Source of the DNA: Stegostoma tigrinum | Taxonomy: Eukaryota | Reading direction: 5' to 3' | Assembly (NCBI RefSeq): GCF_030684315.1 | Contig: NC_081387.1 | Coordinates: 6,366,497 to 6,430,496, forward strand | Length of the DNA stretch: 64,000 bases | Shown: positions 12,301-34,851 of the stretch, in pieces | Position numbering within the stretch: the stretch's first letter is position 1 | Layout: every line of letters starts with the position of its first letter | Notes under the pieces: model-generated | Seen by the model: only the letters and a program-made list of their open reading frames with translations | Databases searched by the model: none | What the model was told of the DNA's origin: nothing | Program-made: the position numbers and the translations under genes

Positions 12301-12575
12301 GAGTCACACAAACAGAGGTCGAGGGGAGAGAGCCACACGGACAGGAAGAGGGTGAGGGAAATGTGTCACACAAACAGGAGAGCGAAGGGAAGAAGTCACA
12401 CTGACAGGAAGAGTGTTGAGGTGGGAGTTACACTAAAACAGTGAGTGAAAGGAATCATATTAACAGCAGGGAAGGGAGTCACACTAACAGAAAGTGAGGG
12501 GAGGGGGATATGCTGACAGGTGAGGAATAAGCGGAGGGAATCACACTAACAGGTGGAGAGTGAGGAAATGTGTCA
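9390..12575 (+). repeat. Degenerate purine-rich ~30-bp minisatellite (GGGAGTCACACTAACAGGAGAGTGAGGGGA-like); resumes at 16725-18014 and 31221-31660
   Basis: GTCACACTAACAG core recurs about every 29-33 nt; interrupted by CR1 (about 10030-10510) and PLE (10847-11000) fragments. Confidence 0.9.
10847..11000. mobile_element. Short inverted PLE family A insertion
   Basis: Minus-strand pLTR piece joined to a plus-strand pLTR end; flanked by agagaatga(a/g)gtga at 10833-10846 and 11001-11014. Confidence 0.75.
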
Positions 12576-15500
12576 CACGAACAGGAGATTTGAGGTTGGG
12601 GGGTCACACTAACAGGGGCAGAGGGAGAGAAGGGTCCCACACCGACAGAGATTTGAGGTGAGGGGGGTCACACTAACAGGGGGAGAGGGAGAGAAGGGTG
12701 CCACACCGACAGGGATTTGAGGTGAGGGGGGTCACACTAACAGGGGGAGAGGGAGAGAAGGGTGCCACACCGACAGAGATTTGAGGTGAGGGGGGTCACA
12801 CTAACAGGGGCAGAGGGAGAGAAGGGTCCCACACCGACAGAGATTTGAGGTGAGGGGGGTCACACTGACAGGGGGAGAGGGAGAGAAGGGTCCCACACCG
12901 ACAGAGATTTGAGGTGAGGGGGGTCACACTGACAGGGGCAGAGGGAGAGAAGGGTCCCACACCGACAGAGATTTGAGGTGAGGGGGGTCACACTAACAGG
13001 GGCAGAGGGAGAGAAGGGTCCCACACCGACAGAGATTTGAGGTGAGGGGGGTCACACTGACAGGGGGAGAGGGAGAGAAGGGTGCCACACCGACAGAGAT
13101 TTGAGGTGAGGGGGGTCACACTAACAGGGGCAGAGGGAGAGAAGGGTGCCACACCGACAGAGATTTGAGGTGAGGGGGGTCACACTAACAGGGGGAGAGG
13201 GAGAGAAGGGTGCCACACCGACAGAGATTTGAGGTGAGGGGGGTCACACTAACAGGGGGAGAGGGAGAGAAGGGTGCCACACCGACAGAGATTTGAGGTG
13301 AGGGGGGTCACACTAACAGGGGGAGAGGGAGAGAAGGGTGCCACACCGACAGAGATTTGAGGTGAGGGGGGTCACACTAACAGGGGGAGAGGGAGAGAAG
13401 GGTGCCACACCGACAGAGATTTGAGGTGAGGGGGGTCACACTGACAGGGGCAGAGGGAGAGAAGGGTCCCACACCGACAGAGATTTGAGGTGAGGGGGGT
13501 CACACTAACAGGGGGAGAGGGAGAGAAGGGTCCCACACCGACAGAGATTTGAGGTGAGGGGGGTCACACTAACAGGGGGAGAGGGAGAGAAGGGTCCCAC
13601 ACTGACAGAGATTTGAGGTGAGGGGGGTCACACTAACAGGGGCAGAGGGAGAGAAGGGTGCCACACCGACAGGGATTTGAGGTGAGGGGGGTCACACTAA
13701 CAGGGGGAGAGGGAGAGAAGGGTCCCACACCGACAGAGATTTGAGGTGAGGGGGGTCACACTAACAGGGGGAGAGGGAGAGAAGGGTGCCACACCGACAG
13801 AGATTTGAGGTGAGGGGGGTCACACTGACAGGGGGAGAGGGAGAGAAGGGTCCCACACCGACAGAGATTTGAGGTGAGGGGGGTGACACTAACAGGGGGA
13901 GAGGGAGAGAAGGGTGCCACACCGACAGAGATTTGAGGTGAGGGGGGTCACACTAACAGGGGGAGAGGGAGAGAAGGGTGCCACACCGACAGAGATTTGA
14001 GGTGAGGGGGGTCACACTAACAGGGGGAGAGGGAGAGAAGGGTGCCACACCGACAGAGATTTGAGGTGAGGGGGGTCACACTGACAGGGGGAGAGGGAGA
14101 GAAGGGTGCCACACCGACAGAGATTTGAGGTGAGGGGGGTCACACTGACAGGGGCAGAGGGAGAGAAGGGTCCCACACCGACAGAGATTTGAGGTGAGGG
14201 GGGTCACACTAACAGGGGCAGAGGGAGAGAAGGGTCCCACACCGACAGAGATTTGAGGTGAGGGGGGTCACACTGACAGGGGGAGAGGGAGAGAAGGGTG
14301 CCACACCGACAGAGATTTGAGGTGAGGGGGGTCACACTAACAGGGGCAGAGGGAGAGAAGGGTGCCACACCGACAGAGATTTGAGGTGAGGGGGGTCACA
14401 CTAACAGGGGGAGAGGGAGAGAAGGGTGCCACACCGACAGAGATTTGAGGTGAGGGGGGTCACACTAACAGGGGGAGAGGGAGAGAAGGGTGCCACACCG
14501 ACAGAGATTTGAGGTGAGGGGGGTCACACTAACAGGGGGAGAGGGAGAGAAGGGTGCCACACCGACAGAGATTTGAGGTGAGGGGGGTCACACTGACAGG
14601 GGCAGAGGGAGAGAAGGGTCCCACACCGACAGAGATTTGAGGTGAGGGGGGTCACACTAACAGGGGGAGAGGGAGAGAAGGGTCCCACACCGACAGAGAT
14701 TTGAGGTGAGGGGGTTCACACTGACAGGGGCACAGGGAGAGAAGGGTCCCACACCGACAGAGATTTGAGGTGAGGGGGGTCACACTAACAGGGGGAGAGG
14801 GAGAGAAGGGTGCCACACCGACAGAGATTTGAGGTGAGGGGGGTGACACTAACAGGGGGAGAGGGAGAGAAGGGTGCCACACCGACAGAGATTTGAGGTG
14901 AGGGGGGTCACACTAACAGGGGGAGAGGGAGAGAAGGGTGCCACACCGACAGAGATTTGAGGTGAGGGGGGTCACACTAACAGGGGGAGAGGGAGAGAAG
15001 GGTGCCACACCGACAGAGATTTGAGGTGAGGGGGGTGACACTAACAGGGGGAGAGGGAGAGAAGGGTGCCACACCGACAGAGATTTGAGGTGAGGGGGGT
15101 CACACTAACAGGGGGAGAGGGAGAGAAGGGTGCCACACCGACAGAGATTTGAGGTGAGGGGGGTCACACTAACAGGGGGAGAGGGAGAGAAGGGTCCCAC
15201 ACCGACAGAGATTTGAGGTGAGGGGGGTCACACTAACAGGGGCAGAGGGAGAGAAGGGTGCCACACCGACAGGGATTTGAGGTGAGGGGGGTCACACTAA
15301 CAGGGGGAGAGGGAGAGAAGGGTCCCACACCGACAGAGATTTGAGGTGAGGGGGGTCACACTAACAGGGGGAGAGGGAGAGAAGGGTGCCACACCGACAG
15401 AGATTTGAGGTGAGGGGGGTCACACTGACAGGGGGAGAGGGAGAGAAGGGTCCCACACCGACAGAGATTTGAGGTGAGGGGGGTGACACTAACAGGGGGA

Positions 15501-16724
15501 GAGGGAGAGAAGGGTGCCACACCGACAGAGATTTGAGGTGAGGGGGGTCACACTAACAGGGGGAGAGGGAGAGAAGGGTGCCACACCGACAGAGATTTGA
15601 GGTGAGGGGGGTCACACTAACAGGGGGAGAGGGAGAGAAGGGTGCCACACCGACAGAGATTTGAGGTGAGGGGGGTCACACTGACAGGGGGAGAGGGAGA
15701 GAAGGGTGCCACACCGACAGAGATTTGAGGTGAGGGGGGTCACACTAACAGGGGCAGAGGGAGAGAAGGGTGCCACACCGACAGAGATTTGAGGTGAGGG
15801 GGGTCACACTAACAGGGGGAGAGGGAGAGAAGGGTGCCACACCGACAGAGATTTGAGGTGAGGGGGGTCACACTGACAGGGGCAGAGGGAGAGAAGGGTC
15901 CCACACCGACAGAGATTTGAGGTGAGGGGGGTCACACTAACAGGGGGAGAGGGAGAGAAGGGTGCCACACCGACAGAGATTTGAGGTGAGGGGGGTCACA
16001 CTAACAGGGGCAGAGGGAGAGAAGGGTGCCACACCGACAGAGATTTGAGGTGAGGGGGGTCACACTAACAGGGGGAGAGGGAGAGAAGGGTGCCACACCG
16101 ACAGAGATTTGAGGTGAGGGGGGTCACACTGACAGGGGCAGAGGGAGAGAAGGGTCCCACACCGACAGAGATTTGAGGTGAGGGGGGTCACACTAACAGG
16201 GGCAGAGGGAGAGAAGGGTGCCACACCGACAGAGATTTGAGGTGAGGGGGGTCACACTAACAGGGGCAGAGGGAGAGAAGGGTGCCACACCGACAGAGAT
16301 TTGAGGTGAGGGGGGTCACACTAACAGGGGCAGAGGGAGAGAAGGGTCCCACACCGACAGAGATTTGAGGTGAGGGGGGTCACACTAACAGGGGCAGAGG
16401 GAGAGAAGGGTGCCACACCGACAGAGATTTGAGGTGAGGGGGGTCACACTGACAGGGGCAGAGGGAGAGAAGGGTCCCACACCGACAGAGATTTGAGGTG
16501 AGGGGGGTCACACTAACAGGGGCAGAGGGAGAGAAGGGTCCCACACCGACAGAGATTTGAGGTGAGGGGGGTCACACTAACAGGGGCAGAGGGAGAGAAG
16601 GGTCCCACACCGACAGAGATTTGAGGTGAGGGGGGTCACACTAACAGGGGCAGAGGGAGAGAAGGGTGCCACACCGACAGAGATTTGAGGTGAGGGGGGT
16701 GACACTAACAGGGGCAGAGGGAGA
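12575..16724 (+). repeat. Homogeneous 64-bp tandem repeat, about 65 copies (dimer of two 32-bp subunits)
   Basis: Unit GTCACACTAACAGGGGGAGAGGGAGAGAAGGG-TGCCACACCGACAGAGATTTGAGGTGAGGGGG; period read from 12671 to 12735. Confidence 0.97.
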
Positions 16725-17681
16725 GGATTGAGTCACACTGACAGGGTGAGATTGAGGGGAGGGCCTCACTCTAACAGGATTGTGAGGGTAGGCCGTTACC
16801 TTAGCAGGAGGAGAGCTGAGCAGGGAGCCACATTAACAGAGAGTGAGGGAGGGAGTCTCACTAACATGTAGAGAGTGAGAGAAGAGAGTCACACTAACTA
16901 GAGGAGTACAGGGAGGGAGTCACGCTCATAGGAGGACATCGAGGGGAGGGAGTTTCCCATCTACTGATAGTGAGGGGAAGGAGTTACCCTGACAGGAGAC
17001 GAGTGACAGGAGGGAGTTGCACTGACAGGAGAGTGAAGGGAGGGAGTCACGATACTCAGAGGAGAGTGAGGGGACGAATCACACTAACACAAGGAGAGTG
17101 GCGCAGGCAGCCACACTAAAAGGGTGAGATTAAGGAGACGAAGTCATACTACCAGGAGGGCTAAGGTAGGGAGTCACATTAACAGGAGGAGAGCTGAGGA
17201 GGGAGTTACACTTAGAGGGAGTGAGGGGAGAAAGTCACTCTAACACACATTGTGTGGAGCGAGGGAGTAACACTGATAGGATCAGATTCAGGGGGAGGGA
17301 AAGTCATATACACAGGAGGATTGAGGGAGGGAGAGTCACGTTAACAGCAGGAGATTTGAGGAGGGAGTCACATTAACAGAGATTCAGGTGAGGAAGTTTC
17401 ACTAACAGGAGGAGAGTGAAGGGAGGGAGTCACACTGACAGGAGGAGAGTGAGGGGAGGGAGTCACATAATCACAAGGAGTGAAGGGGAGGGAGTCAGAC
17501 TGACAAGCAGTTAGTAAGGGAAGTGAGTCACAGTCATAGAAGCAGAAAGCAAAAGGAAGAGTGTCACAATGACGGAGAGAGGGGAAGGAGTGACACTACC
17601 AGGAGGATAGTGAAGGCAGGAAGTGACACTAACAGAGAGTGTGGGGCCGATGTCACACTAATAGAGGAGATTGGGGCAGTG

Positions 17682-18014
17682 AGTCACACTAACGGAGAGT
17701 GAGGGGAGAGTGTCACACTAACGGAGAGTGAGGGGAGAGTGTCACACTAACGGAGAGTGTTACACTAACGGAGAGTGAGGGGAGAGTGTCACACTAACGG
17801 AGAGTGAAGGGAGAGTGTTACACTAACGGAGAGTGAGGGGAGAGTGTCACACTAACGGAGAGTGAGGGGAGAGTGTCACACTAACGGAGAGTGAAGGGAG
17901 AGTGTTACACTAACGGAGAGTGAAGGGAGAGTGTCACACTAACGGAGAGTGAGGGGAGAGTGTCACACTAACGGAGAGTGAGGGGAGAGTGTCACACTAA
18001 TGGAGAGTGAGGGG
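17682..18014 (+). repeat. 29-bp tandem repeat (GAGGGGAGAGTGTCACACTAACGGAGAGT)
   Basis: Near-identical units, period 17701 to 17730. Confidence 0.92.
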
Positions 18015-18359
18015 TGGGTCTGGATGTGAGTTTGCTCACTGAGCTGGAAGGTTAGTTTTCAGACGTTTTGTCACTTTTTTTTTATTTGAAAAAAATATAC
18101 TTTATTCATAGAATGTACAAAAAATAAAACATTTATACACCTACCCAGTCATGCAAACCGCTCCGGGTTACCCAGGGGGTACGTACACCAACTAAAGGGA
18201 AAAAACAAAACAGAGAAAAAAAAAAAAAACAAAGCAAAGAAACCGCCCCGGCAGTCGTCACCCCGCACAGTCCCAGTTGGCCCCCTGACCAGTTGGGGAA
18301 GGCGCCAGCTGGGCCCAGTTACCAGATAGGATTCTTTTCCCTTGTCTGGACGAGGGGGC

Positions 18360-21300
18360 TCATACGGTGGTCTTTCCCCACCGCGCCTTGGCGGCGGCTG
18401 CCCCAAGCTTTAGCGCGTCCCTCAGCACGTAGCCCTGGACCTTGGAGTGCGCCAGTCTGCAACACTCGGTCGGGGTCAGTTCTTTCAGCTGGCAGACCAG
18501 CAAGTTGCGGGCAGACCAAAGAGCGTCTTTCACCGCATTGATGGTCCTCCAGGCACAGTTGATGTTGGTCTCGGTGTGCGTCCCCGGAAACAGCCCGTAG
18601 AGCACGGAGTCCCGCGTCACGGAGCTGCTCGGGACGAACCTCGACAAATACCACTGCATCCCCCTCCAGACCTCCTGCGCATAGGCACACTCCAGAAGGA
18701 GGTGATCGACAGTCTCGTCCCCCCCGCAGCCACCTCGAGGGCAGCGTGCGGTGGTGCAGAGATTCCGGGCATGCATAAAGGATCTCACTGGCAGAGCCCC
18801 TCTCACCGCCAGCCAAGCAATGTCCTTGTGCTTGTTTGAAAGTTCTGGCGATGAGGCATTCTGCCAAACGACTTTGGCAGTCTGCATGGGGAACCACACG
18901 ACGGGATCCACCCTCTCCTTTTCCCGAAGGGTCCTGAGGATACTACGTGCTGACCACTGCCTGACGGCCTTGTGGTCAAAGGTGTTTCCTTTCAAAAATT
19001 TCTCCACGAAGGACAGGTGGTACGGAACGGTCCAACTACTCGGAGCGTTCCGCGGCAACGAGGCCAGGCCCATCCTTCGCAACACCGGGGACAGGTAGAA
19101 CCTCAGTAAGTAGTGACACTTGGTGTTTGCGTACTGAGGATCTACGCACAGCTTGATGCAGCCACACACAAAGGTAGCCGTCAGGGCGAGGGTGGCGTTC
19201 GGTACGCCCTTTCCCCCATTTCCCAGGTCTTTGTACATGGTATCTCTGCGGACCCGGTCCATCCTCGACCCCCAAATGAAGTGGAAGATGGCCCGGGTGA
19301 CGGCAGCAGCGCAGGTCCAGGTAATAGGCCAGGCCTGCGCCACATACAACAGTACCGAAAGCCCCTCGCACCTGACAACCAGGTTCTTACCCGCGATGGA
19401 GAGGGACCGGAGCGTCCACCTGCCCAGCTTCTGCTTAAATTTGGAGATACGCTCCTCCCAAGTCTTAGTGCATGCCCCAGCTCCACCAAACCAAACACCC
19501 AGCACCTTCAGGTAGTCTGTCCTGACGGTGAAGGGGATGAAGGAGCGGTCGTCCCAGTTCCCGAAGAACATGACCTCGCTCTTACCCCTATTGACTTTGG
19601 CACCCGAGGCCAGTTCAAACTGGCCGCAGATGTCCAACAGCCTACTCACCGACCGACGATCGGTGCAGAAGACGGCGACATCATCCATGTACAGGGAGGT
19701 CTTGACCTGAAGGCCTCCGCTGCCTGGGATAGTCACGCCCCTCAGGCTCACGTCCTTCCTGATGGAGGCGGCGAAGGGCTCCACACAGCACACGAACAAG
19801 GCAGGAGAGAGCGGGCAGCCCTGCCTGACTCCAGATCTAACAGGAAAACTGTCTGATTCCCACCCGTTGATCGAGACTGCGCTAACGATGTTGGCGTAGA
19901 GCAGCCGGATCCAATTGCGGATGCCCTCCCCAAACCCCAATTTGGAGAGGACGTCCCTCATGTAAGCATGAGAGACCCTGTCGAAGGCCTTCTCCTTGTC
20001 CAGGCTGACGAGGCAGGTGTCCACCCGCCTGTCCTGTACGTAGGCGATCATATCCCTGATGAGCGCGAGGCTCTCAGCGATCTTCCTGCCCGGCACAGCA
20101 CAGGTGTGGTCAGGGTGAATCACCGACTCCAGGACAGACCTGACCCGGTTGGCAATGACCTTGGCCAGGATTTTGTAGTCCACGTTCAAAAGTGAAATGG
20201 GACGCCAATTCTTAATTTCTTCCCTCTCCCCCTTCCTCTTGTAAATGAGGTTGATGATGCCCTTCCTCATGGACTTGCACATTTCCCCTGCCCGAAGCGC
20301 ACTATCGTACACCTCCAGCAGGTCCTGGCCGACCAGGCCCCACAGAGCAGAATACAGCTCGACCGGTAAGCCATCACTTCCGGGAGTCCTATTCCTCTGC
20401 AAGGACTTGAGGGCTCTGGCCAGCTCGTCCAGGGATATCGGCCGGTCCAGCCACTCCCTCGTGCCGTCGTCTAAGACCTCCGTGATAGACGACAGGAACG
20501 ACTCGGAGGCCGTGCTATCCGTGGGCTTCGTGTCGTACAGTCCGGCATAGAAGGATCTGCTGATCCTCAAAACGTCGGGCCGAGACGACGTCACCGAGCC
20601 GTCGTCCTCCTTCAGCCGGCTAAGCACAGAGCTCTCTTTGTGCACCTTCTGAAAGAAGAAACGCGAGCACGTCTCGTCCTACTCCACGGAGCGGACCCTG
20701 GACCGGAAGATTATCCTGGAGGCCTCCGCGGCGAAGAGCGAGGCTTGCTGGCCCCTCACCTTGCGGAGGTCCTCCGTGACATCGACCCCCATCAACTGCA
20801 GAAGGAGCAGGTTCTGCACCCTTTTCTGGAGTCGCGACAGCTTTCCCCGCCTCTCTCTTGCCTTCTGAACACCCTTGAGGACAAAGAACCTCTTGATGTT
20901 CTCCTTCACCGTCTCCCACCAGTCGCCTGGAGACTTAAAGAGGGGTTTCACGGTTCTCCAACCGGTGTACTCCCTCTTAAGCTCCTCGACGTTCTCTGGG
21001 GTCAACAGAGTCGTGTTGAGCTTCCACGTCCCCTTGCCGGCCGGCTGGTCGTCCTGTAAGTGACAGTCGGCCAACAGGAGGCAGTGGTCAGAGAAGAACA
21101 CCGGCTCGACACCGGTGGATCTGACCGAGAACGTCCGCGACACAAACAGGAAGTCTATCCTTGAGCGGATAGACCCGTCTGGCCGCGACCAGGTGTACCT
21201 CTGCTGCGCTCCGTCTGCAGGGGTGCTGAAGACGTCGAGCAGCTTGGCGTCCTTCACCGTGCCCATCAGGAATCTGGACGTGACGTCCAGTTGAATCCCC

Positions 21301-21779
21301 CCACCCGCTGTCCCCACGCCGGATCTTCCATCTGCATCAATGATGCAGTTGAAGTCTCCGCCTAGGATGACCGGCCTGGACGTAGCCAGCAGGGGTGGAA
21401 GCCGCTGCAGGACGTCCAACCGCTCACTCCGTACCACTGGGGCGTACACGTTGATCAGCCTCAGGGGAGCATTCCTGTAGGTGATGTCAGCCACTAGGAG
21501 GCGCCCCCCCACCACCTCCTGAACTTGAGAGATGGTGAAGTTGTGCCCCCACAGCAGAATAGCCAGGCCCGAGGAGCGACAGTCGTTACCCCCCGACCAG
21601 ATCGAAGGCCCACAGGTCCAGGCGCCGGACCATTTCCCGTACCTGCCGAGGTGCGGTATCCCGCACTCCTGCAGAAACAGGAGGTCCGCCTTGATGGTGG
21701 TCAGGTAGGCCAACGTGGACACACATCTCGCGGTTGACTTGACGCTGCGCACATTAATGCTCGCAACTCGTACCCCCAT
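18360..21779 (-). pseudogene. Tx1 copy L ORF2 (APE endonuclease + reverse transcriptase), one premature stop
   Basis: ATG 21779. TAG at 20679-20681 where copy R has CAG. ORFs 20679-21809 and 18360-20645 are in the same frame. Confidence 0.92.
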
Positions 21780-23217
21780 TGTGGGCAGTGACCGCAGTAC
21801 CCTCCCCAAGTCTAAGGTCCAGCCCCTCCATCTGTCCCTTCATGCCCATTGCCCGGGCTAACTGCTGGACGCTCTCTGGGCTCAGGAAACCGTCTGTGCT
21901 GCCTTCCGGGTGGCATTCCCCCGCCAGGGGTGCGGAGGCAGGAGGGTCCGGCTCCGGATCAGGCTGGGGACGTGCTGTTTCCTCCTTCCCGCCTGGAAGT
22001 TCCGGGGGGCCCTCCAGTGCTCCAGCGGCACTTGACTGGGTGTCGGAGTGAGCCTCAGGGCGCCTCCCGTCACCTGGAAGCGGGGTGCTGCTTTCCTTCC
22101 CCCTCGAGACCTTTAACTTCTGCTTCGGGTGGGCCCTCACTGAATCCTCCTCGTCAGAGGAGCTCTTATAGCCCCCCTGTAGCTGCCTCTTCCCTCCTGA
22201 TTGTTGCGGTTCCTGGGCCCGTCGACGCACCTTCCTCCTCGCTTTCCGGACTGTAGTCCACTCCCCTGGGTTGCCTGCCGCCGCCTCCATTGGCTCCGGG
22301 TTGTCGGGGGGGATCGGAGCCTGCAGGGGTGCTTTGCTGGCCTCGGGCCCATCCTGCAGGGCTGGGCCCTCCTGCACGGCCTGGCCCTCCTGCACATTAG
22401 TGGGGTCCTTGCTGGGCCCTGGTGCCTTCCTCTCCTCCGGGGGGGCTGGCCCCGCATTACCCCTGCCGGCGACCTGGGCGTAGGTGGTACCCCGCCGCGG
22501 GCATGCCCTATAGAAGTGGCCCGCTTCCCTGCAAAGGTTGCAGCTTCTCTCTCGTGGGCAATCCTTTGCAAGGTGTCCCTCCTCCCTGCAGTTCCTGCAG
22601 ATGGTGGCTTTGCAGTCGGCCGCCATGTGACCTGACCTACCACAGGCATGGCAGACTTTAGGTTGCCCTGCATAGGTCAGGTAGCCCCTGCTCCCGCCGA
22701 TCGCGAAGCTGGACGGTGGGTGTGCGACATTCCCGTCTGCGCCCATCCTCAGCGTCACCTTGACCTACCTCTTACTCGTCCAGATGCCAAAGGGGTCCAT
22801 GATGTCAGTTAGGTCCCCTTCCACCTTCACATACCTTCCGAGGAAGGTCAGGACATCAACTGCTGGCACATGCGGGTTGTACATGTGTACAGTCACCATA
22901 CGGCTCCTCTGCGCTGGCATCACAAACAGTGGGACAGCGGTCAATACCGAGACGGGGCCCTCACCTCCTTTCTCCTTGAAAACCTCCAGGAAGCGCTCGC
23001 AAAGCTTGGCACTCCGGAAGGTCACATCGTAAAAACCCCCTCCGGGGAAATCCTGCAGGCAGTAAATGTCCGCAGCAGCGAACCCACAACAGTCCAACAG
23101 GACCCTCTTCACGAAGAAGGTGCGGTCCACAGGTGCACCTTCATCTACCTTCTTTACAGAAACACGGATGGTGTTCCGGACCCCCTGACCTGGGGCACGA
23201 GCACTTGCCGCAGCCAT
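21754..23217 (-). pseudogene. Tx1 copy L ORF1 (gag-like zinc-knuckle protein), one premature stop
   Basis: ATG 23217 (MAAASARAPG). TAG at 22765-22767 where copy R has CAG. Knuckles CHACGRSGHMAADC, CRNCREEGHLAKDC, CNLCREAGHFYRAC. Confidence 0.88.
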
Positions 23218-23644
23218 CGTTGCAGGTTGGCTGCTCCCCTGAACCAGCGTTAGGCCGAAGCCAGCATTAAGATCCACTGGTCGCAAGGGTGCACAGCCAA
23301 CCCGACGTCCTCCTTTCACCTCCAAGACTGCACTCTCGTCCTCTCAGTCCACAAGAGAGTGAGTCTTTATTGTGTTCAAGATGTAAGCTGGTTCACTGAG
23401 CTGTAAGGTTTGTTCCCAGATGCTTTGTCACCATTCTAGGTAACATCATCAGTGAGCCTCCGACGAAGCACTGGTGTTATGTCCCGCTTTATATTTATTT
23501 GGTTAGGTTTCCTTGGGTTGGTGATGTCATTTCCTGTGTCAGTGATGTCATTTCCTGTTCTTTTTCTCAAAGGATGGTAGATTGGCTCCAATTCAGGTTG
23601 ATGTTGATGGATGTGAACAGAGCTGTTCCGTCAAGGTTAAAATA

Positions 23645-24007
23645 GTATCAGAGATAATGGGAACTGCAGATGCTGGAGATTCCAAGATAATAAAATGTGA
23701 GGCTGGATGAACACAGCAGGCCAAGCAGCATCTCAGGAGCACAAAAGCTGACGTTTCGGGCCTAGACCCTTCATCAGAGAGGGGGATGGGGGGAGGGAAC
23801 TGGAATAAATAGGGAGAGAGGGGGAGGCGGACCGAAGATGGAGACTCTCCATCTTCGGTCCGCCTCCCCCTCTCTCCCTATTTATTCCAGTTCCCTCCCC
23901 CCATCCCCCTCTCTGATGAAGGGTCTAGGCCCGAAACGTCAGCTTTTGTGCTCCTGAGATGCTGCTTGGCCTGCTGTGTTCATCCAGCCTCACATTTTAT
24001 TATCTTG
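23645..24007. mobile_element. Palindromic PLE family A pLTR insertion nested in the family B element
   Basis: Inverted repeat 23683-24007 centred on 23845; 14-bp direct repeat tgttccgtcaaggt at 23624-23637 and 24006-24019. Confidence 0.88.
23913..23940 (+). ncRNA. Minimal hammerhead ribozyme motif, PLE family A (intact copies also on - strand at 10906-10933, 23750-23777, 46909-46936)
   Basis: CUGAUGA-A-GGGUC(UA)GGCCC-GAAAC-GUC: conserved core boxes, stem II and the palindromic ACGU in place of stem III, as known for PLE hammerheads. Stem I is weak. Confidence 0.75.
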
Positions 24008-24019
24008 TTCCGTCAAGGT

Positions 24020-25560
24020 GTTGCTTGCAGATACCGACACTTACCAACAGGTGGCGATAGACCCAACCCCACAACGAGAGAACCGAATCACAGCCTTACT
24101 CAAAAAACTTCAAAAATCTGGAGAATTAAACAAGAGAGAGTTCCAAAAAATGAAACCAGATGGATCCAACACACCACGCTTCCACGGACTACCAAATATT
24201 CACAAACCAGAAGCCCCCCTCAGACCCATAGCCTCGCTACTTGGAACACCAACGTACAGATTAGCCAAGGAACTCCACCAAAGACTAAAACACCTAGTAG
24301 AAGACTCCCGCCACTCCATTCACTCCACCCAAGAATTCCTGAACACCATCAAAGACACCAAGATAGAAGAGGATGAAATAATGGTCTCCTTTGACGTAAC
24401 AGCCCTGTTCACATCCATCAACATCAACCTGGCCAAAGAAACACTGATGACACTATTAGAAGAACCGAAGACACATACTCCAGACACCACCAACCTCATC
24501 AGCAAGGACAACATCATCAAGCTAGTGGACCTATGCCTCACCATCCACTTCACTTTCAATAACAAATCCTACAGAGAAACCAACGGTACACCCATGGGAT
24601 CTCCGATATCAGGGTTCTTAGCAGAGGCAGTAATGCAGAGACTCGAACAAACAGCTCTGCCAATCATCCAACCCAAACTTTGGGTCCGCTACGTGGATGA
24701 CACCTTTGTCATCACTAAACAAAACAAATTAGAGGAAACCTTCAAGACCATCAATAATACCCTTACTGGCATAACATTCACAAAAGAGGAGGAAAACAAC
24801 AGCAAACTGCCATTCCTAGATGTCACAGTAGAGCGAACAGTCAATGGGGAACTTCAAACCAGCGTCTACAGGAAAACAACACATACGGACCAAATACTGA
24901 ACTACAGGAGCAACCATCCCAACATCCACAAACGAAGCTGCATTAGAACATTATTCCAATGAGCCACCACACACTGCAGCACAGAGGAACTACGAAGAGC
25001 AGAGGAAAATCACCTATACAGCGTATTCAAAAAGAATGGGTACCCAATGAACTCAGTCCGCCGATTCCTCAGCAACAAACCCAAACAAACAGACAAAACG
25101 GGCCCAGAAACCATAACCACTCTCCCCTACATCAAAGACATTTCTGAAAAGACTGCCAGACTACTCAGACCTCTGGGCATCAGGGTAGCCCACAAACCCA
25201 CCAACACACTAAAACAGCAGCTAATGAACTTAAAAGGCCCTATTTAGACAACAAGCAAAACGAACGTCATCTACAAAACACCTTGCAAAAACTGTGACAA
25301 ACACTACATTGGACAAACAGGCAGAAAGCTAGCCACCAGAATACATGAACATCAAGCCACAAAACGACATGACCCACTATCACTCGTATCCTTACATACA
25401 GATGAGGAAGGACACCACTTTGATTGGGACAACACATCCATCCTAGGACAAGCCAAACAGAGACAGGCACGAGAATTCCTTGAAGCATGGCATTCCAACC
25501 GGAACTCCATCAACAAACACATTGACTTGGAGCCAATCTACCATCCCCTGAGAAAAAGAA
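24020..25560 (+). pseudogene. PLE family B reverse transcriptase + GIY-YIG ORF, disrupted
   Basis: ORF 23976-24962 has LPNIHK, LRPI, SFDVTALFT, GTPMGSPIS, RYVDD, LPFLD, VYRK. After TGA 24960-24962 and further lesions it reads NVIYKTPCKNCDKHYIGQTGRKLATRIHEH. Confidence 0.92.
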
Positions 25561-25665
25561 CAGGAAATGACATCACCAATGCAGGAAATGACATTGCCAA
25601 CCCAAGGAAACCTAACCAGATCAATAGAAATTGGGACATAACACCAGCGCTTCACCGGAGGCTCA

Positions 25666-25699
25666 CTGATGATGTTACCTAGAATGGTGACGAAACATC
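25666..25699 (+). ncRNA. Hammerhead-like motif spanning the PLE/Tx1 5' junction
   Basis: CUGAUGA-U-GUUACC(UAGAAU)GGUGAC-GAAAC-AUC; the triplet is AUC rather than the GUC of the empty site. Confidence 0.6.
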
Positions 25700-25900
25700 T
25701 GGGAACAAACCGGCAAGCTCAGTGAACTAGCTTACATCTCGAACACAATAAAGACCCACTCTCTTGTGGACCGAGAGGAGGAGAGTGCTGTCTTGGAGGT
25801 GAAAGGAGGACGTCGGGTTGGCTGTGCACCCTTGCGACCAGTGGATCTTAATGCTGGCTTCGGCCTAACGCTGGTTCAGGGGAGCAGCCAACCTGCAACG

Positions 25901-27364
25901 ATGGCTGCGGCAAGTGCTCGTGCCCCAGGTCAGGGGGTCCGGAACACCATCCGCGTTTCTGTAAAGAAGGTGGATGAAGGTGCACCTGTGGACCGCACCT
26001 TCTTCGTGAAGAGGGTCCTGTTGGACTGTTGTGGGTTCGCTGCTGTGGACATTTACTGCCTGCAGGATTTCCCCGGAGGGGGTTTTTACGACATGACCTT
26101 CCGGAGTGCCAAGCTTTGCGAGCGCTTCCTGGAGGTTTTCAAGGAGAAAGGAGGTGAGGGCCCCCTCTCTGTATTGACCGCTGTCCCGCTGTTTGTGATG
26201 CCAGCACAGAGGAGCCATATGGTGACTGTACATATGTACAACCCGCATGTGCCAGCAGTTGATGTCCTGACCTTCCTCGGAAGGTATGTGAAGGTGGAAG
26301 GGGACCTAACTGACATCGTGGACCCCTTTGGCATCTGGACGAGTAAGAGGCAGGTCAAGGTGACGCTGAGGATGGGCGCGGACAGGAATGTCGCACACCC
26401 ACTGTCCAGCTTCGTGATCGGCGGGAGCAGGGGCTACCTGACCTATGCAGGGCAACCTAAAGTCTGCCATGCCCGTGGTAGGTCAGGTCACATGGCGGCC
26501 GACTGCAAAGCCACCATCTGCAGGAACTGCAGGAAGGAGGGACACCTTGCAAAGGATTGCCCACGAGAGAGAAGCTGCAACCTTTGCGGGGAAGCGGGCC
26601 ACTTCTATAGGGCATGCCCGCGGCGGGGTACCACCTACGCCCAGGTCGCCGGCAGGGGAAATGCGGGGCCAGCCCCCCCCGGAGGAGAGGAAGGCACCAG
26701 GGCCCAGCAAGGACCCCACTAATGTGCAGGAGGGCCAGGCCGTGCAGGAGGGTCCAGCCCTGCAGGATGGGCCCGAGGCCAGCAAAGTGCCCCTGCAGGC
26801 TCCGCCCCCCCCGACAACCCGGAGCCAATGGAGGTGGCGACAGGCGACCCAGGGGAGTGCACAACAGTCCGGAAAGCGAGGAGGAAGGTGCGTCGACGGG
26901 CCCAGGAACCGCAACAATCAGGCGGGAAGAGGCAGCTACAGGGGGGCTATAAGAGCTCCTCTGACGAGGGGGATTCGGAGAGGGCCCACCCAAAGCAGAA
27001 GTTAAAGGTCTCGAGGGGGAAGGAAAGCAGCACCCCGCTTCCAGGTGACGGGAGGCGTCCTGAGGCTCACTCCAACACCCAGTCAAGTGCCGCTGGAGCA
27101 CTGGAGGGCCCCCCGGAACTTCCAGGCGGGAAGGAGGAAACAGCGCGTCCCCAGCCTGACCCGGAGCCGGACCCTCCTGCCTCCGCACCCCTGACGGGGG
27201 GATGCCACCCGGAAGGCAGCACGGACGGTTTCCTGAGCCCGGAGAGCGTCCAGCAGTTAGCCCGGGCAATGGGCATGAAGGGACAGATGGAGGGGCTGGA
27301 CCTTGGACTTGGGGAGGGTACTGCGGTCACTGCCCACAATGGGGGTACGAATTGCGAGCATTAA
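25901..27364 (+). pseudogene. Tx1 copy R ORF1, frameshifted in poly-C runs
   Basis: The copy-L protein sequence is split over ORFs 25766-26722, 26445-27005 and 26828-27364. Confidence 0.85.
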
Positions 27365-30300
27365 TGTGCGCAGCGTCAAGTCAACCGCGAGATGTGTGTC
27401 CACGTTGGCCTACCTGACCACCATCAAGGCGGACTTCCTGTTTCTGCAGGAGTGCGGGATACCGCACCTCGGCAGGTACGGGAAATGGTCCGGCGCCTGG
27501 ACCTGTGGGCCTTCGATCTGGTCGGGGGGTAACGACTGTCGCTCCTCGGGCCTGGCTATTCTGCTGCGGGGGCGCGACTTCACCATCTCTCAAGTTCAGG
27601 AGGTGGTGGGGGGGCGCCTCCTAGTGGCTGACATCACCTACAGGAATGCTCCCCTGAGGCTGATCAATGTGTACGCCCCAGCGGTACGGAGTGAGCGGTT
27701 GGCCGTCCTGCAGCGGCTTCCACCCCTGCTGGCTACATCCAGGCCGGTCATCCTAGGCGGAGACTTCAACTGCATCATTGATGCAGATGGAAGATCCGGC
27801 GTGCGGACAGTGGGTGGGGGGATTCAACTGGACGTCACGTCCAGATTCCTGATGGGCACGGTGAAGGACGCCAAGCTGCTCGACGTCTTCAGCACCCCTG
27901 CAGACGGAGCGCAGCAGAGGTACACCTGGTCGCGGCCAGACGGGTCTATCCGCTCAAGGATAGACTTCCTGTTTGTGTCACGGGTGTTCTCGGTCAGGTC
28001 CATCGGCGTCGAGCCGGTGTTCTTCTCTGACCACTGCCTCCTGCTGGCCGACTGTCACTTACAGGATGATCAGCCGGCCGGCAAGGGGACGTGGAAGCTC
28101 AACACGACTCTGTTGACCCCAGAGAACGTCGAGGAGCTTAAGAGGGAGTACACCGGTTGGAGGACCGTGAAACCCCTCTTTGAGTCTCCAGGCGACTGGT
28201 GGGAGACGGTGAAGGAGAACATCAAGAGGTTCTTTGTCCTCAAGGGTGTTCAGAAGGCGAGAGAGAGGCGGGGAAAGCTGTCGCGACTCCAGAAAAGGGT
28301 GCAGAACCTGCTCCTTCTGCAGTTGATGGGGGTCGATGTCACGGAGGACCTCCGCGAGGTGAGGGGCCAGCAAGCCTCGCTCTTCACCGCGGAGGCCTCC
28401 AGGATAATCTTCCGGTCCAGGGTCCGCTCCGTGGAGCAGGACGAGACGTGCTCGCGTTTCTTCTTTCAGAAGGTGCACAAAGAGAGCTCTGTGCTTAGCC
28501 GGCTGAAGGAGGACGACGGCTCGGTGACGTCGTCTCGGCCCGACGTTTTGAGGATCAGCAGATCCTTCTATGCCGGACTGTATGACACGAAGCCCACGGA
28601 CAGCACGGCCTCCGAGTCGTTCCTGTCGTCTATCACGGAGGTCTTAGACGACGGCACGAGGGAGTGGCTGGACTGGCTGATATCCCTGGACGAGCTGGCC
28701 AGAGCCCTCAAGTCCTTGCAGAGGAATAGGACTTCCGGAAGCGACGGCTTACCGGTCGAGCTGTATTCCGCTCTGTGGGGCCTGGTCGGCCAGGACCTGC
28801 TGGAGGTGTACGATAGTGCGCTTCGGGCAGGGGAAATGTGCAAGTCCATGAGGAAGGGCATCATCACCCTTATTTACAAGAGGAAGGGGGAGAGGGAAGA
28901 AATTAAGAATTGGTGTCCCATTTCACTTTTGAACGTGGACTACAAAATCCTGGCCAAGGTCATTGCCAACCGGGTCAGGTCTGTCCTGGAGTCAGTGATT
29001 CACCCTGACCAAACCTGTGCTGTGCCGGGCAGGAAGATCACTGAGAGCCTCGCGCTCATCAGGGATACGATCGCCTACGTACAGGACAGGCGGGTGGACA
29101 CCAGCCTCGTCAGCCTGGACCAGGAGAAGGCCTTCGACAGGATCTCTCATGCTTACATGAGGGACGTCCTCTCCAAATTGGGGTTTGGGGAGGGCATCCG
29201 CAATTGGATCCGGCTGCTCTACGCCAACATCGTTAGCGCAGTCTCGATCAACGGGTGGGAATCAGACAGTTTTCCTGTTAGATCTGGAGTCAGGCAGGGC
29301 TGCCCGCTGTCTCCTGCCTTGTTCGTGTGCTGTGTGGAGCCCTTCGCCGCCTCCATCAGGAAGGACGTGAGCCTGAAGGGCGTGACTATCCCAGGCAGCG
29401 GAGGCCTTCAGGTCAAGGCCTCCCTGTACATGGACGATGTCGCTGTCTTCTGCACCGATCGTCGGTCGGTGACTAGGCTGTTGGACATCTGCGGCCAGGG
29501 TGCGTCCCCGGAAACAGCCCGTAGAGCACGGAGTCCCGCGTCACGGAGCTGCTCGGGACAAACCTCGACAAATACCACTGCATCCCCCTTGCCCTTTGGC
29601 CTCGGGTGCCAAAGTCAATAGGGGTAAGAGCGAGGTCATGTTCTTCGGGAACTCGGACGACCGCTCTTTCATCCCCTTCACCCTCAGGACTGACTACCTG
29701 AAGGTGCTGGGTGTTTGGTTTGGTGGAGCTGGGGCATGCACGAAGACTTGGGAGGAGCGTATCGCCAAACTGAAGCAGAAGCTGGGCAGGTGGACGCTCC
29801 GGTCCCTCTCCATCGCGGGTAAGAACCTGGTTGTCAGGTGCGAGGGGCTTTCGATACGGTTGTATGTGACGCAGGCCTGGCCTATTCCCTGGGCCTGCGC
29901 CGCTGCAGTCACCCGGGCCATCTTCCACTTCATTTGGGGGTCGAGGATGGACCGGGTCCGCAGGGACATCATGCACAAAGATCTGGGAAATGGGGGAAAG
30001 GGCGTACCGAACGCCACCCTCGCCCTGACGGCTACCTTTGTGTGCGGCTGCATCAAGCTGTGCGTAGATCCTCAGTACGCAAACACCAAGTGTCACTACT
30101 TACTGAGGTTCTACCTGTTCCCGGTGTTGCGAAGGATGGGCCTGGCCTCGTTGCCGCGGAACGCTCTGAGTAGTTGGACCGTCCCGTACCACCTGTCCTT
30201 CGTGGAGAAATTTTTGAAGGGAAGCCCCTTTGACCACAAGGCCGTCAGGCAGTGGTCAGCACGTAGTATTCTTGAGACCCTTTGGGACAAGGAGAGGGTG

Positions 30301-30849
30301 GATCCCGTCGTGTGGTTCCCCACGCAGACTGCCAAAGTCGTTTGGCAGAATGCCTCATCGCCAGAACTTTCAAACAAGCACAAGGACATTGCTTGGCTGG
30401 CGGTGAGAGGGGCTCTGCCAGTGAGATCCTTTACGCATGCCCGGAATCTCTGTGCCACCGCACGCTGCCCTCGAGGCGGCTGCGGGGGGGACGAGACTGT
30501 TGATCACCTCCTTCTGGAGTGTGCCTATGCGCAGGAGGTCTGGAGGGGGATGCAGTGGTATTTGTCGAGGTTCGTCCCGAGCAGCTCCGTGACGTGGGAC
30601 TCCGTGCTCTCCGGGCTGTTTCCCGGGACGCACACCGAGACCAACATCAACTGCGCCTGGAGGACCATCAATGCGGTGAAAGACGCTCTTTGGTCTGCCC
30701 GCAACTTGCTGGTCTGCCAGCTGAAAGAACTGACCCCGACCGAGTGTTGCAGACTGGCGCACTCCAAGGTCCAGGACTACGTGCTGCGGGACGCGCTAAA
30801 GCTTGGGGCAGCCGCCGCCAAGGCGCGGTGGGGAAAGACCACCGTATGA
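27339..30849 (+). pseudogene. Tx1 copy R ORF2 (APE + RT), broken by an inverted insert at 29499-29596
   Basis: ORFs 27303-29621 and 29500-30849; ATG 27339 overlaps the ORF1 end by 26 nt. Confidence 0.92.
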
Positions 30850-31659
30850 AACCGCTCGTCCAGAATAGAAAGAAAGGGCCTTATCTAGTAATTGTCCCAG
30901 CTGGCGCCTTCCCCAACTGATCTGGGGGTCAACGGGGACTGTGCGGGGTGACGACTTCCAGGGTATTTTCTTTGCTTTTTTTTTCTTCTTTGTTTTTTTT
31001 TCCTTTAGTTGGTGTACATACCCCCTGGGTAACCCGGAGCGGCTTGCATGACTGGGTGTGTGTGTAAATATGTTTTATTTTTTGTACATCTTATGAATAA
31101 AGTATATTTTATCAAATTAAAAAAAGGTGACGAAACGTCTGAAAACTAACCTTCCAGCTCAGTGAGCAATCTCACTTCCAGAACCTCAACCTGAGCTACA
31201 AATCTTCTCAAAACTCACTCGTGAGGGGAGGGTGTCACACTAATGGAGAGTGAGGGGACGAGGTCACACCAACACATAGAGAGCCCAGGGTGGTTATCGC
31301 ACTCAGGAGGGGATTGGTGGAGTGCGTCATACTAACAAGAAGAGAGTGAAGAGGGGGAGTCACACGGACAAGAGGAGAGTGAGGTGTGGAAGTGGCACTG
31401 GCAGGGGGACAATGATGGAAGGGAGTCACACTAAGACGTGGAGGCCAGGCAGGGAATAATACTAACAGTACCAGAATGAGGGGAGGGATTCACATAAACA
31501 GGAGGGTGAGAGGAGGGAGTCACTTAACCGGAGGAGATTTGAGGAGGTAGATACACTAACAGAGAGTGAGGTGTGGGAGTCACAGTAACTGGAGGAGAAA
31601 GAGAGGAAGGAGTCACACTAAAGGAAAGTGAGAAGAGGGAGTCACACTGGCAGGAGAAT

Positions 31660-33445
31660 ACGGGGCCCTCTGTACATGACCTACTGCATTAACACCCACG
31701 CATGGCTCTCTGTACATGACCCACTGCATTAACACCCACATAGGGGTCTCTGTACACAACCAGCTCCATTAACACCCACACAGGGGTCTCTGTACACAAC
31801 CAGCTCCATTAACACCCACACAGGGGTCTCTGTACACAACCAGCTCCATTAACACCCACACAGGGGTCTCTGTACACAACCAGCTCCATTAACACCCACA
31901 CAGGGGTCTCTGTACACAACCAGCTCCATTAACACCCACACAGGGGTCTCTGTACACAACCAGCTCCATTAACACCCACACAGGGGTGTCTGTACATGAC
32001 CCACTGCATTAACCCACACGCTGGGCCCTCTGTACATGACCCACTGCAATAAAACCCACACAGGGCTCTCTGTACACAACCAGCTCCATTAACACCCACA
32101 CAGGGGTGTCTGTAAATGACCCACTGCATTAACCCTCACACTGGGCTCTCTGTACATGACCCACTGCATTAAACCTCACACAGCGGTCTCTGTACACAAC
32201 CAGCTCCATTAACACCCACTCAGGGTGTCTGTCAATGGCCCACTGCATTAACCCTCACACTGGGCTCTCTGTACATGACCCACTGCATTAGCCCTCACAC
32301 AGGGCTCTCTGCACATGACCCACTGCATTAACACCCACACTGGGCTCTCTGTACATGACCCACTGCATTAAACCTCACACAGCGGTCTCTGTACACAACC
32401 AGCTCCATTAACACCCACACAGGGGTCTCTGTACACAACCAGCTCCATTAACACCCACACAGGGGTGTCTGTACATGACCCACTGCATTAACCCACACGC
32501 TGGGCCCTCTGTACATGACCCACTGCAATAAAACCCACACAGGGCTCTCTGTACACAACCAGCTCCATTAACACCCACACAGGGGTGTCTGTAAATGACC
32601 CACTGCATTAACCCTCACACTGGGCTCTCTGTACATGACCCACTGCATTAAACCTCACACAGCAGTCTCTGTACACAACCAGCTCCATTAACACCCACAC
32701 AGGGTGTCTGTCAATGACCCACTGCATTAACCCTCACACTGGGCTCTCTGTACATGACCCACTGCATTAGCCCTCACACAGGGCTCTCTGCACATGACCC
32801 ACTGCATTAACACCCACACTGGGCTCTCTGTACATGACCCACTGCATTAAACCTCACACAGCGGTCTCTGTACACAACCAGCTCCATTAACACCCACACA
32901 GGGGTGCCTGTAAATGACCCACTGCATTAACCCTCACACTGGGCTCTCTGTACATGACCCACTGCATTAACACCCACACTGGGCTCTCTGTACATGACCC
33001 ACTAAATTAACACCCACACAGGTCTCTCTGTACACAACCAGCTCCATTAACACCCACACAGGGGTATCTGTACATGACCCACTGCATTAACCCTCACACT
33101 GGGCTCTCTGTTTTCTATCCACTGCTTAACGCTCACACTGGGCTCTCTGCGCACAACCAGCTTCATTAACCCTGCACTGGGCTCTCTGTACATGACCCAC
33201 TGCATTAGCCCTCACACAGGGCTCTCTGTACATGACACACTGCATTAACACCCACACTGGGCTCTCTGTGCATGACCCACTGCATTAACACCCACACATG
33301 GCTCTCTGTACATGACACACTGCATTAACCCTCACACAGGGCTCTCTGTTTTCTATCCACTGCATTAACGCTCACACTGGGCTCTCTGGGCACAACCAGC
33401 TTCATTAACCCTGCACTGGGCTCTCTGTACATGACCCACTCCACT
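31660..33445 (+). repeat. ~40-bp minisatellite (CTCTGTACACAACCAGCTCCATTAACACCCACACAGGGGT and variants) with a 479-bp higher-order duplication
   Basis: Direct periodicity; identical translated blocks at 31929-32129 and 32408-32608. Confidence 0.95.
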
Positions 33446-34851
33446 AATTCACACCTACTGAATTATCTAATTTTGAGACATGTTGCTAAGTTTGGCTCCT
33501 CACTCATCCCATTAATACATTGGTTCCCAGTAAACAACATCCAGATTATAAACATCTCGTCCTGGGTTTCAAATCCTTCCACACCTTTACCTGGCAGTTC
33601 CTGTGATCCTCTCTGGGTCCGAAACCCTCTGAGATTTGTGCCCCCATCTCATTCTGGCATCTCAATCATCCCACATTAAAATCAACCCACACTGAGGGCT
33701 GTACCTTCAGTTAGCTGGGCTCTAACTCCCCCACCCATACCTTTCCATCTCTCTTCAGAAAGCTCCTTGTCACTAAGCCAGTTCTGAAAAAGGGTGACTG
33801 GATATTGTCAGACCTACTGAGTTTCTCCAGCAATTTCTGTTTTTTTGCTTGTTCTGCTCCAGGACTTGCTGCCACGAGGTCATAATCTGACCAAACGGGG
33901 TGTTTATCAGCCTGTAGATCTTTCGAATCCACCTGGTGGCATTCACTGAGAGCATGGTAAGGAAATCCTGCAGAAGGCAATGTCGGAGCATTTCAGTATT
34001 TTACCTGGAATTATCAGAGACCCCAGTCGCCCTGTGGAATACCCTTGGGTACAGGGAGGATTGAAATTGAGAAAATGTAGTTTGGTACTTCCCCTGAAAA
34101 GACATGAGGTGGGATAGAGGGATACAGTCTTTAGAAGGGTTGGGGGTTTTAGTTGTGATGGGCAGCGTGTCAGTGCTGGTTCGGAGGTCCAAAGGGCCTG
34201 TTCCTGTGCTGTAATTGTTTTTTGTTCTTTATTCTTTGTTTATCACTGCTTGAAAGAAACGCAATGTGTACGTGCTGGTGATGGACTGGGGTGGCCGAAA
34301 TCAGAAATCATACAACACTAGGTTATTGTCCAACAAGTTCATTTGAAGACACAAGCTTTTGGAGCGTAGCCCCATTGCCAGGTGAAGAGAGAAAGAAGTA
34401 CACAGAACACAGACTTCATAAGTAAAAGATCAAATGGTCAGACAATTGTGATGAGGATGTAGTAAACAAATCTAGGATGCTGTTAAATCTTTAATCAGTA
34501 AGAATTAATTGTTTAATTGATTAATAGGTCTATGTTAATCCCTAAATTTTTTTCAAGTCACTGTACTGAGAGAACTATAGGTTTTATCAGTATAAAGAAG
34601 AGATGATATTAAGTCAGGCAATGCATGTTAGGTGCGAGACCTTGTCTAGAATTTGTTTGTGTTTTGTGTTTTTGTGTTTTGGCATGGAGTCAGGCTGGTT
34701 TTATTTCTGAAATAGGAATTTATAACATGCCACATTGACCGTCTATAACTTGTGTGTTTTTTGAAGAAAATAGAATGTATCTGCAAATATAGATTCACCC
34801 CGTAGTTTTCACCTTTGTGTGTGTGTGAAGAGGCGATGCGTGAGTAATTCT

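Follow-up and report, generated by a model that had tools for sequence, protein, structure and literature searches.

Several long interspersed nuclear elements (LINEs) of the Tx1 clade are documented as target-specific, with targets that include the Tx1D piggyBac, Mariner-N4_AMi, particular long terminal repeat (LTR) retrotransposons, U2 small nuclear RNA (snRNA) genes and microsatellites: Tx1L of Xenopus inserts into the piggyBac-type transposon Tx1D, the crocodilian Tx1-Mar into Mariner-N4_AMi, and Tx1-8_Crp and Tx1-4_AMi into particular LTR retrotransposons (PMC4494074). Keno, also of the Tx1 clade, inserts in U2 snRNA genes, SINEU elements have snRNA-derived 5′ heads, and for elements of the Keno/SINEU type co-transcription with the target has been discussed as a route both to expression and to reinforced targeting (PMC4494074). 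Here we describe two related LINE copies in a stretch of 64,000 nucleotides from Stegostoma tigrinum (contig NC_081387.1, positions 6,366,497 to 6,430,496 of the forward strand; referred to in the following as the window). They probably represent a target-specific LINE family of the L1/Tx1 type, whose endonuclease would recognize the sequence of Penelope-like elements (PLEs) belonging to one family at their minimal hammerhead.

R2, which resides in 28S ribosomal DNA, is a site-specific LINE with a restriction-like endonuclease and a 5′ ribozyme of its own that resembles the one of hepatitis delta virus (HDV); it is co-transcribed with its target and self-trimmed. The hammerheads of PLEs are of a minimal kind, with the core CUGAUGA...GAAA...UC, one additional nucleotide following A9, pairing of G10.1 with C11.1, a helix II of 6 bp, a palindromic 15.2-16.2 and no real helix III (PMC4209133). 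They self-cleave weakly, as dimers (PMC4209133; Cervera and de la Pena 2014).

Two LINE copies in an inverted Penelope structure

When the window was compared with itself, one large inverted repeat appeared, in which a left arm (18019-23611) pairs with a right arm (31182-25506) at 94-97% identity; a 158-nt internal piece of either arm matches 54825-54982 too. From the outside in, each arm starts with a short stretch of Penelope tail and a poly(A), which are followed by the LINE of 5.4 kb, a leader of 39 nt, 14 nt of sequence GGTGAC[G/A]AA[A/G]CATC, the 20-mer CTGATGATGTTACCTAGAAT and further Penelope sequence. The left LINE copy (L) lies on the minus strand and the right copy (R) on the plus strand, and both are nearly full-length LINEs with an apurinic/apyrimidinic-type endonuclease (APE) and a reverse transcriptase (RT). 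Of the PLE, just the final ~180 nt are present in the left arm; the right arm extends inward to include the PLE body at 24009-25685, and the same 29-bp satellite, in the same orientation, lies outside both arms. The arrangement is thus a head-to-head pair of truncated PLEs within a satellite, with one LINE in each PLE copy. The features are as follows (ORF, open reading frame; UTR, untranslated region; TSD, target-site duplication).

18019-18074, minus strand: Penelope tail beyond the L insertion, GTGACAAAACGTC/TGAAAAC...CACATCCAGA, with the 3′ TSD copy GTGACAAA at 18067-18074
18075-23418, minus strand: L copy of the Tx1-type LINE, with poly(A) (18075-18083), 3′ UTR, ORF2, ORF1, 5′ UTR and leader (23380-23418)
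23419-23432, minus strand: L 5′ target duplicate GGTGACAAAGCATC, with variant A at position 7, running into a CATC that is most likely element-borne
23433-23611, minus strand: 5′-truncated Penelope 3′ part of the left arm, ending in the hammerhead 5′ half CTGATGATGTTACCTAGAAT (23433-23452)
24009-25685, plus strand: 5′-truncated PLE body of the right arm, with RT, GIY-YIG motif and two stops; hammerhead 5′ half at 25666-25685
25686-25699, plus strand: R 5′ target duplicate GGTGACGAAACATC, made up of GGTGACGAAAC (variant G) and ATC; the predicted ribozyme cut falls after 25699
25700-25738, plus strand: R leader of 39 nt, TGGGAACAAACC...GCTTACATC, apparently a diverged copy of the Penelope sequence after the cut site; L has the same leader
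25739-31125, plus strand: body of the R copy of the Tx1-type LINE, with ORF1, ORF2, 3′ UTR with AATAAA and poly(A) (31119-31125)
31126-31216, plus strand: R Penelope tail, with the 3′ TSD copy GGTGACGAAAC (31126-31136) followed by GTC/TGAAAACTAACC...
54825-54982, minus strand: unoccupied target, a Penelope 3′ fragment with an intact minimal hammerhead (54864-54897)

Both copies share one insertion point

The preliminary description of this DNA had stated that both poly(A) tails join one shared target, and the junctions, read directly in L and R, bear this out. Both copies end in a short poly(A) joined to (G)GTGACRAAACGTCTGAAAAC: in R, the poly(A) at 31119-31125 is followed by GGTGACGAAACGTCTGAAAACTAACC from 31126, and in L, GTGACAAAACGTCTGAAAACTAACC, read downward from 18074, follows the poly(A) at 18075-18083. 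Where no LINE interrupts it, at 54864-54897 (minus strand), the site reads CTGATGATGTTACCTAGAATGGTGACGAAACGTC. Comparison of the junctions with this site places both insertions, as had been proposed, at the boundary between loop II and the 3′ strand of stem II; the two insertion points are within 1 nt of each other and in the same orientation, and the third site in the window is empty.

The local variant of the target is present on either side of each insert, GTGACAAA in L (A) and GGTGACGAAAC in R (G), so that each copy does have its own duplication, of 8-11 nt. The earlier account had also noted the 20-mer CTGATGATGTTACCTAGAAT ahead of both copies. It is indeed upstream of both, but it does not abut the LINE body: the 53 nt between them comprise the TSD of 8-11 nt and an element-borne, Penelope-like leader. 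A metagenome scan with the 3′ junction AAAAARGTGACRAAACRTCTGAAAAC returned no match; none was expected, and the result is uninformative.

The target carries a predicted minimal hammerhead

The sequence into which the LINEs have inserted is the 3′ end of a PLE, with an RT followed by a GIY-YIG motif in one ORF, and a minimal hammerhead. The PLE body (24009-25685) matched RVT_1 with E=3.6e-11. The GIY-YIG match (E=0.0024, 18.6 bits) is under the Pfam cut-off of 22.6, and the motif, YIGQTGRKLATRIHEH (YIGQTGR...EH), was read directly. The stop codon of the PLE ORF is the TAG at 25680-25682, inside loop 2 of the hammerhead, and the LINE enters 3 nt past this stop. The PLE frame (...RRLTDDVT, then the stop) crosses helix I, the catalytic core and the 5′ strand of helix II before it reaches the TAG in loop 2; the ribozyme motif thus overlaps the end of the coding sequence. 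The corresponding TAGs are at 23436-23438 and 54881-54883, minus strand.

At 54864-54897 (minus strand), the uninterrupted site has the core CUGAUGA, an additional U behind A9, a G10.1-C11.1 pair, GAAA, a palindromic ACGU that replaces helix III, and C17. Its helix II has 6 bp (GUUACC/GGUGAC) and a loop of sequence UAGAAU. A strict minimal-hammerhead descriptor matched this site and gave 0.0 hits per window in 200 simulated Markov-1 windows. Rfam yielded zero hammerhead matches, whether the whole window was searched with the gathering score as cut-off or 54780-54960 with E<=10. This is expected for a motif without helix III, and the hammerhead identification thus rests on the descriptor. When the native site and both junctions were folded as single strands, helix II was predicted in all three, with z-scores of -1.2 to -2.2, and helix I was ambiguous. 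The earlier identification of 54864-54897 as a hammerhead motif agrees with the descriptor match and with the presence of every published minimal-hammerhead feature, and has no support from Rfam.

A second hammerhead family, CTGATGAAGGGTCTAGGCCCGAAACGTC, accounts for four strict descriptor matches in the window, none of which has a LINE insertion. This suggests that the recognized target is the sequence of one PLE family rather than hammerheads in general, and the proposal of the preliminary description that the LINE family targets the PLE ribozyme sequence, which agrees with the two insertions at the same bond and the empty site, is limited accordingly.

Between the two PLE copies lies an inserted near-perfect palindrome of ~370 nt (23638-24007; center, 23844), which has a 13-nt direct repeat, GTTCCGTCAAGGT, on either side (23625-23637 and 24008-24020). 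Both halves of the palindrome contain a CTGATGAAGGGTCTAGGCCCGAAACGTC minimal hammerhead, on opposite strands and never with a Tx1 insertion. Related copies are found at 46844-47024, 47583-47801, 1985-2166, 8682-8896 and 10906-10933. The palindrome looks like a small PLE-derived or retrozyme-like element. The window also includes four satellite arrays, at 9390-12500 and 16700-18018; 12541-16778; 31660-33450; and 50973-53362. The array units are of 29 bp (AGAGTGTCACACTAACGGAGAGTGAGGGG, on both sides of the PLE/Tx1 structure), 64 bp (~97% identity), 40 bp and 33 bp.

Structure and relatives of the LINE

By its domains, the inserted element is identified as a non-LTR retrotransposon of the L1/Tx1 type. 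ORF1 contains RBD_ZCCHC3_1st, RBD_ZCCHC3_2nd and zf-CCHC (CCHC knuckles), and ORF2 contains Exo_endo_phos, the N-terminal APE domain (E=2e-13 in R and 3.6e-15 in L), RVT_1 (E=2e-31) and a C-terminal zf-RVT (E=1.9e-10). The poly(A) tails are A7 in R and A9 in L, both after AATAAA. In R, ORF1 has its first ATG near 25901, ends at 27361 and is interrupted by one stop at 26720, and the frame of ORF2 (27303-30849) is disrupted at 29500-29589, where R has an inverted internal duplication of 90 nt that L lacks. The defects in L are one stop in ORF1 and one in ORF2. The family is young, as judged from the 1-2 defects in the ORFs of each copy and from the identity of at least 99% of many public contigs.

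The closest proteins are from Hemiscyllium ocellatum (81%) and Cetorhinus maximus (77%), followed by amphibian (46-49%) and teleost (37-39%) proteins. These protein matches score 550-890 bits, compared with 205 bits for human L1 ORF2p, which was the top match among solved structures (E=2e-59). Fish relatives include BAD04856 and BAC82621.

The duplication at 29500-29589, found in R only, is an inverted copy of the downstream segment 30544-30633. It is 98.9% identical to the L version of that segment and 95.6% identical to R's own, and it displaces 7 nt, for which most genomic contigs read TTTGAAC. A template switch during reverse transcription may have left this scar.

The target site in public contigs

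Contigs of four public runs were compared with 25400-31300; the bisulfite raw-read runs X23 and X24 were excluded because converted reads would not match. An empty site was seen in three contigs of the same organism, which join 25685 straight to 31126 with 11 letters that fit both sides, and which thereby size the TSD. The 20-mer CTGATGATGTTACCTAGAAT stands directly before 31126 in 105 contigs of the same organism and in 8 of a second organism. Another 255 contigs depart at 25701 into the PLE's own downstream sequence, marking the point where the leader departs from the PLE. Among the best-supported loose ends listed, the weakest of which was represented by 19 contigs, there was none past the poly(A) or ahead of the 5′ end of the LINE.

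The indels of the L-type 3′ UTR recur in other contigs and are thus lineage variants. Many genomic contigs follow the R tail to 31216 and then scatter, and at position 25697, ~59% of the depth in the public contigs is A and 41% G. Runs X10 and X11, from two other organisms, gave a few low-depth (2-7) contigs nearly identical to the LINE, for example with 1 difference in 171-210 nt, while most X11 contigs were <90% alike to it. The near-identical pieces could be sample carry-over or very recent sharing.

Unequal divergence of the two copies

L and R do not differ evenly along their length. In the ORFs the divergence is 2.9% (142/4974), in the PLE flanks 10.8% (24/223; Fisher p=1e-7 against the ORFs, p=2e-5 without CpG changes), in the leader 12.8% and in the 3′ UTR 15.0%. 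In the flanks, leader and UTR the copies thus differ ~4 times as much as in the coding sequence, and the identity falls sharply exactly at the ORF2 stop codon. The coding differences are distributed over codon positions 1, 2 and 3 as 48, 31 and 63 (p=0.004), and the ratio of nonsynonymous to synonymous rates (dN/dS) is 0.41 in the true frame, compared with 0.76 and 1.17 in the shifted frames. The dN/dS ratio and the codon-position bias indicate that the LINEs diverged mainly in active lineages under coding selection, and not as dead duplicated DNA. About 21% of CpGs differ between L and R, which gives two parallel CpG hits in L a chance of ~0.3%.

The preliminary description had argued for two independent insertions on the grounds that the 3′ UTRs are more diverged than the Penelope flanks around them. 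The difference has the claimed direction (15.0% versus 10.8%) but is not significant (Fisher p=0.18), and the telling contrast is the one between the ORFs and all the non-coding sequence. The conclusion itself holds up better than that argument: the unequal divergence, the dN/dS of 0.41 and the target variant that each copy has duplicated for itself support the view that L and R are two separate insertions.

Targeting and alternative explanations

Based on the junctions, we infer the following course of events. The bottom strand would be nicked at 5′-GTCACC/ATTCTA-3′ (slash, putative nick), which on the top strand is equivalent to the bond where loop 2 (UAGAAU) adjoins the 3′ strand of helix II (GGUGAC), 3 nt behind the PLE stop. 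Priming of reverse transcription would take place on the poly(A) tail, and the top strand would be cut 8-11 nt downstream, generating the duplication GGTGACRAAAC. The LINE would enter in the orientation of the PLE; its PLE-like start of ~42 nt makes the 5′ junction resemble an almost complete PLE 3′ end. At the present locus, a head-to-head pair of 5′-truncated PLEs in the 29-bp satellite would have received these insertions, with each copy hit from a slightly different active lineage.

Some points weigh against this reading. The directly read sample is two insertions and one empty site. Since L and R occupy opposite arms of the same inverted structure, they may in part share a history, and the sample of PLE flank is small, at 223 nt. 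The synonymous divergence (dS, 5%) is below that of the UTR and flanks, which needs UTRs that evolve fast or have been exchanged. The public contigs are short and collapse repeats, and the loose ends considered were among the best-supported ones listed, so that the comparison bounds, rather than measures, the off-target share. Finally, the assignment to the Tx1 clade as opposed to other clades of the L1 group is provisional, being based on domain content and best hits, with which it is consistent.

One alternative is that the site-specific insertions were independent but took place elsewhere, each arm having arrived as a PLE-Tx1-PLE composite that was reverse-transcribed by the PLE machinery from one of two source copies. 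Both arms end outward at the PLE 3′ end on the satellite, as expected from PLE priming on both target strands, and the divergences of flank, leader and UTR are similar, at 11-15%. This scheme would require PLE templates of >7 kb, twice, and would have to accommodate an L tail that ends ~30 nt before the R tail. Insertion in situ into an existing inverted PLE pair is simpler, and we consider the composite route unlikely; the conclusion on targeting would be the same either way.

A still less probable explanation is that a single ancient insertion of Tx1 into the PLE was copied later, through an inverted duplication of the DNA or through PLE RNA that already held the LINE, so that the copies are not independent. 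The two copies are, after all, the arms of one inverted structure (18019-23611 and 25506-31182), with PLE 3′ ends that face outward into satellite of equal orientation on both sides, and both 5′ junctions have CATC, where the targets have CGTC, and the same leader. The common CATC and leader are explained equally well if they are borne by the element. Neutral decay after a duplication should be uniform, whereas the divergence changes from 2.9% in the ORFs to 11-15% in the flanks, leader and UTR (p=1e-7), with a break at the stop codon, and gene conversion would have ignored the ORF borders. The dN/dS of 0.41 with its codon-position bias, and the separate variant that flanks each insert on both sides, also speak against later copying.

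Two other origins of the inverted structure were considered and rejected: an assembly duplication, because the arms differ by 3-15%, and L1-style twin priming, because both arms carry an identical 3′ end and not adjoining parts. Chance or a regional hot spot, with an ordinary L1-like endonuclease cutting twice at the same place without sequence recognition, can be practically dismissed: nothing specific favors it beyond the short poly(A) tails and the A-rich TAGAAT next to the nick, the L1 endonuclease prefers TTTT/AA, unlike the context GTCACC/ATTCTA, and the chance that two insertions would fall on one bond in one orientation, given only three sites of this kind in the 64 kb, is of order 1e-4.

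A Penelope-like leader at the 5′ end

Both 5′ junctions read GGTGAC-AA-CATC TGGGAACAAACC...GCTTACATC, while the sequence at the empty site and at the 3′ junction of either copy is ...CGTC TGAAAACTAACC...CTCACATCC. The 39-nt leader, present in both LINEs, is by eye ~70% identical to the PLE sequence after the would-be cut site. Being common to both copies, it belongs to the element. Likewise, the CATC (25697 and 23421) is common to both 5′ junctions and differs from the CGTC of both targets, which suggests that the 5′ end of the element extends upstream beyond the cut site. Most likely, then, the element begins at least 3 nt upstream of the predicted ribozyme cut site, with a TSD of 8-11 nt, and its first 39-42 nt appear to duplicate, in diverged form, the Penelope sequence that follows the insertion point.

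We also considered that the whole 53 nt might be a target-site duplication. This was rejected, as within each element the 5′ copy matches the 3′ copy at only ~70-75%, and the copies are alike between elements. A 5′ end set by the ribozyme cut was likewise rejected as the simplest reading, because L and R have in common, upstream of the cut, a CATC unlike either target.

A more elaborate proposal is that the leader rebuilds the ribozyme and the PLE 3′ end, so that the LINE would be transcribed from the PLE promoter and freed by a ribozyme to which host and LINE each contribute half, and the rebuilt site would be a fresh target. In the junction copies, the 15.2-16.2 palindrome, on which the minimal hammerhead depends in its dimeric form, is lost in both R and L (CAUC), and G12 is lost in L as well. 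The broken palindrome, the missing G12 of L and the upstream start of the element weigh against trimming of the LINE RNA by a rebuilt ribozyme, and we regard the proposal as doubtful. If true, it would amount to an R2-like strategy that borrows the ribozyme of another retroelement.

Comparison with known systems

The preliminary description knew of no described case of a Tx1 family that targets a hammerhead. Our full-text literature search, whose scope did not extend to Repbase and Dfam, likewise found no paper that combines Tx1, Penelope and the hammerhead as element and target. The target is real and probably undescribed; the element is of a known kind, and its target-like leader is unusual.

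Target-specific LINEs bear on two questions: how mobile elements reach safe havens, and how the specificity of an APE endonuclease can be shifted to a long and unique stretch of DNA. A LINE aimed at the conserved ribozyme motif of another retroelement would be a parasite of a parasite. By entering 3 nt past the PLE stop, the LINE splits the hammerhead, which should disable the ribozyme's role for the Penelope element, and such insertions could help to reveal what minimal hammerheads are for. Being young and having a well-defined target of ~30 nt, the family also lends itself in practice to the study, or the adoption, of sequence-specific retrotransposition in a vertebrate.

Compared with the published minimal hammerheads of PLEs, the predicted ribozyme at 54864-54897 has all of their features, and here the PLE stop codon falls in loop 2. 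As for the LINE, its closest counterparts are Tx1L, Tx1-Mar, Tx1-8_Crp and Tx1-4_AMi, which like the present element are of the APE type, have the same set of domains and enter one defined site inside a multicopy transposable element. The present LINE differs from these four in that its host is a Penelope-like retroelement and the bond lies within the hammerhead motif of that host. With Keno and SINEU it has in common a 5′ sequence that appears to derive from the target; there it is carried by relatives, whereas here the head is on the autonomous LINE itself and would copy the part of the target downstream of the insertion point, not an upstream gene. Finally, in contrast to R2, which brings its own ribozyme, any ribozyme at the 5′ junction of the present LINE would be half host and half LINE.

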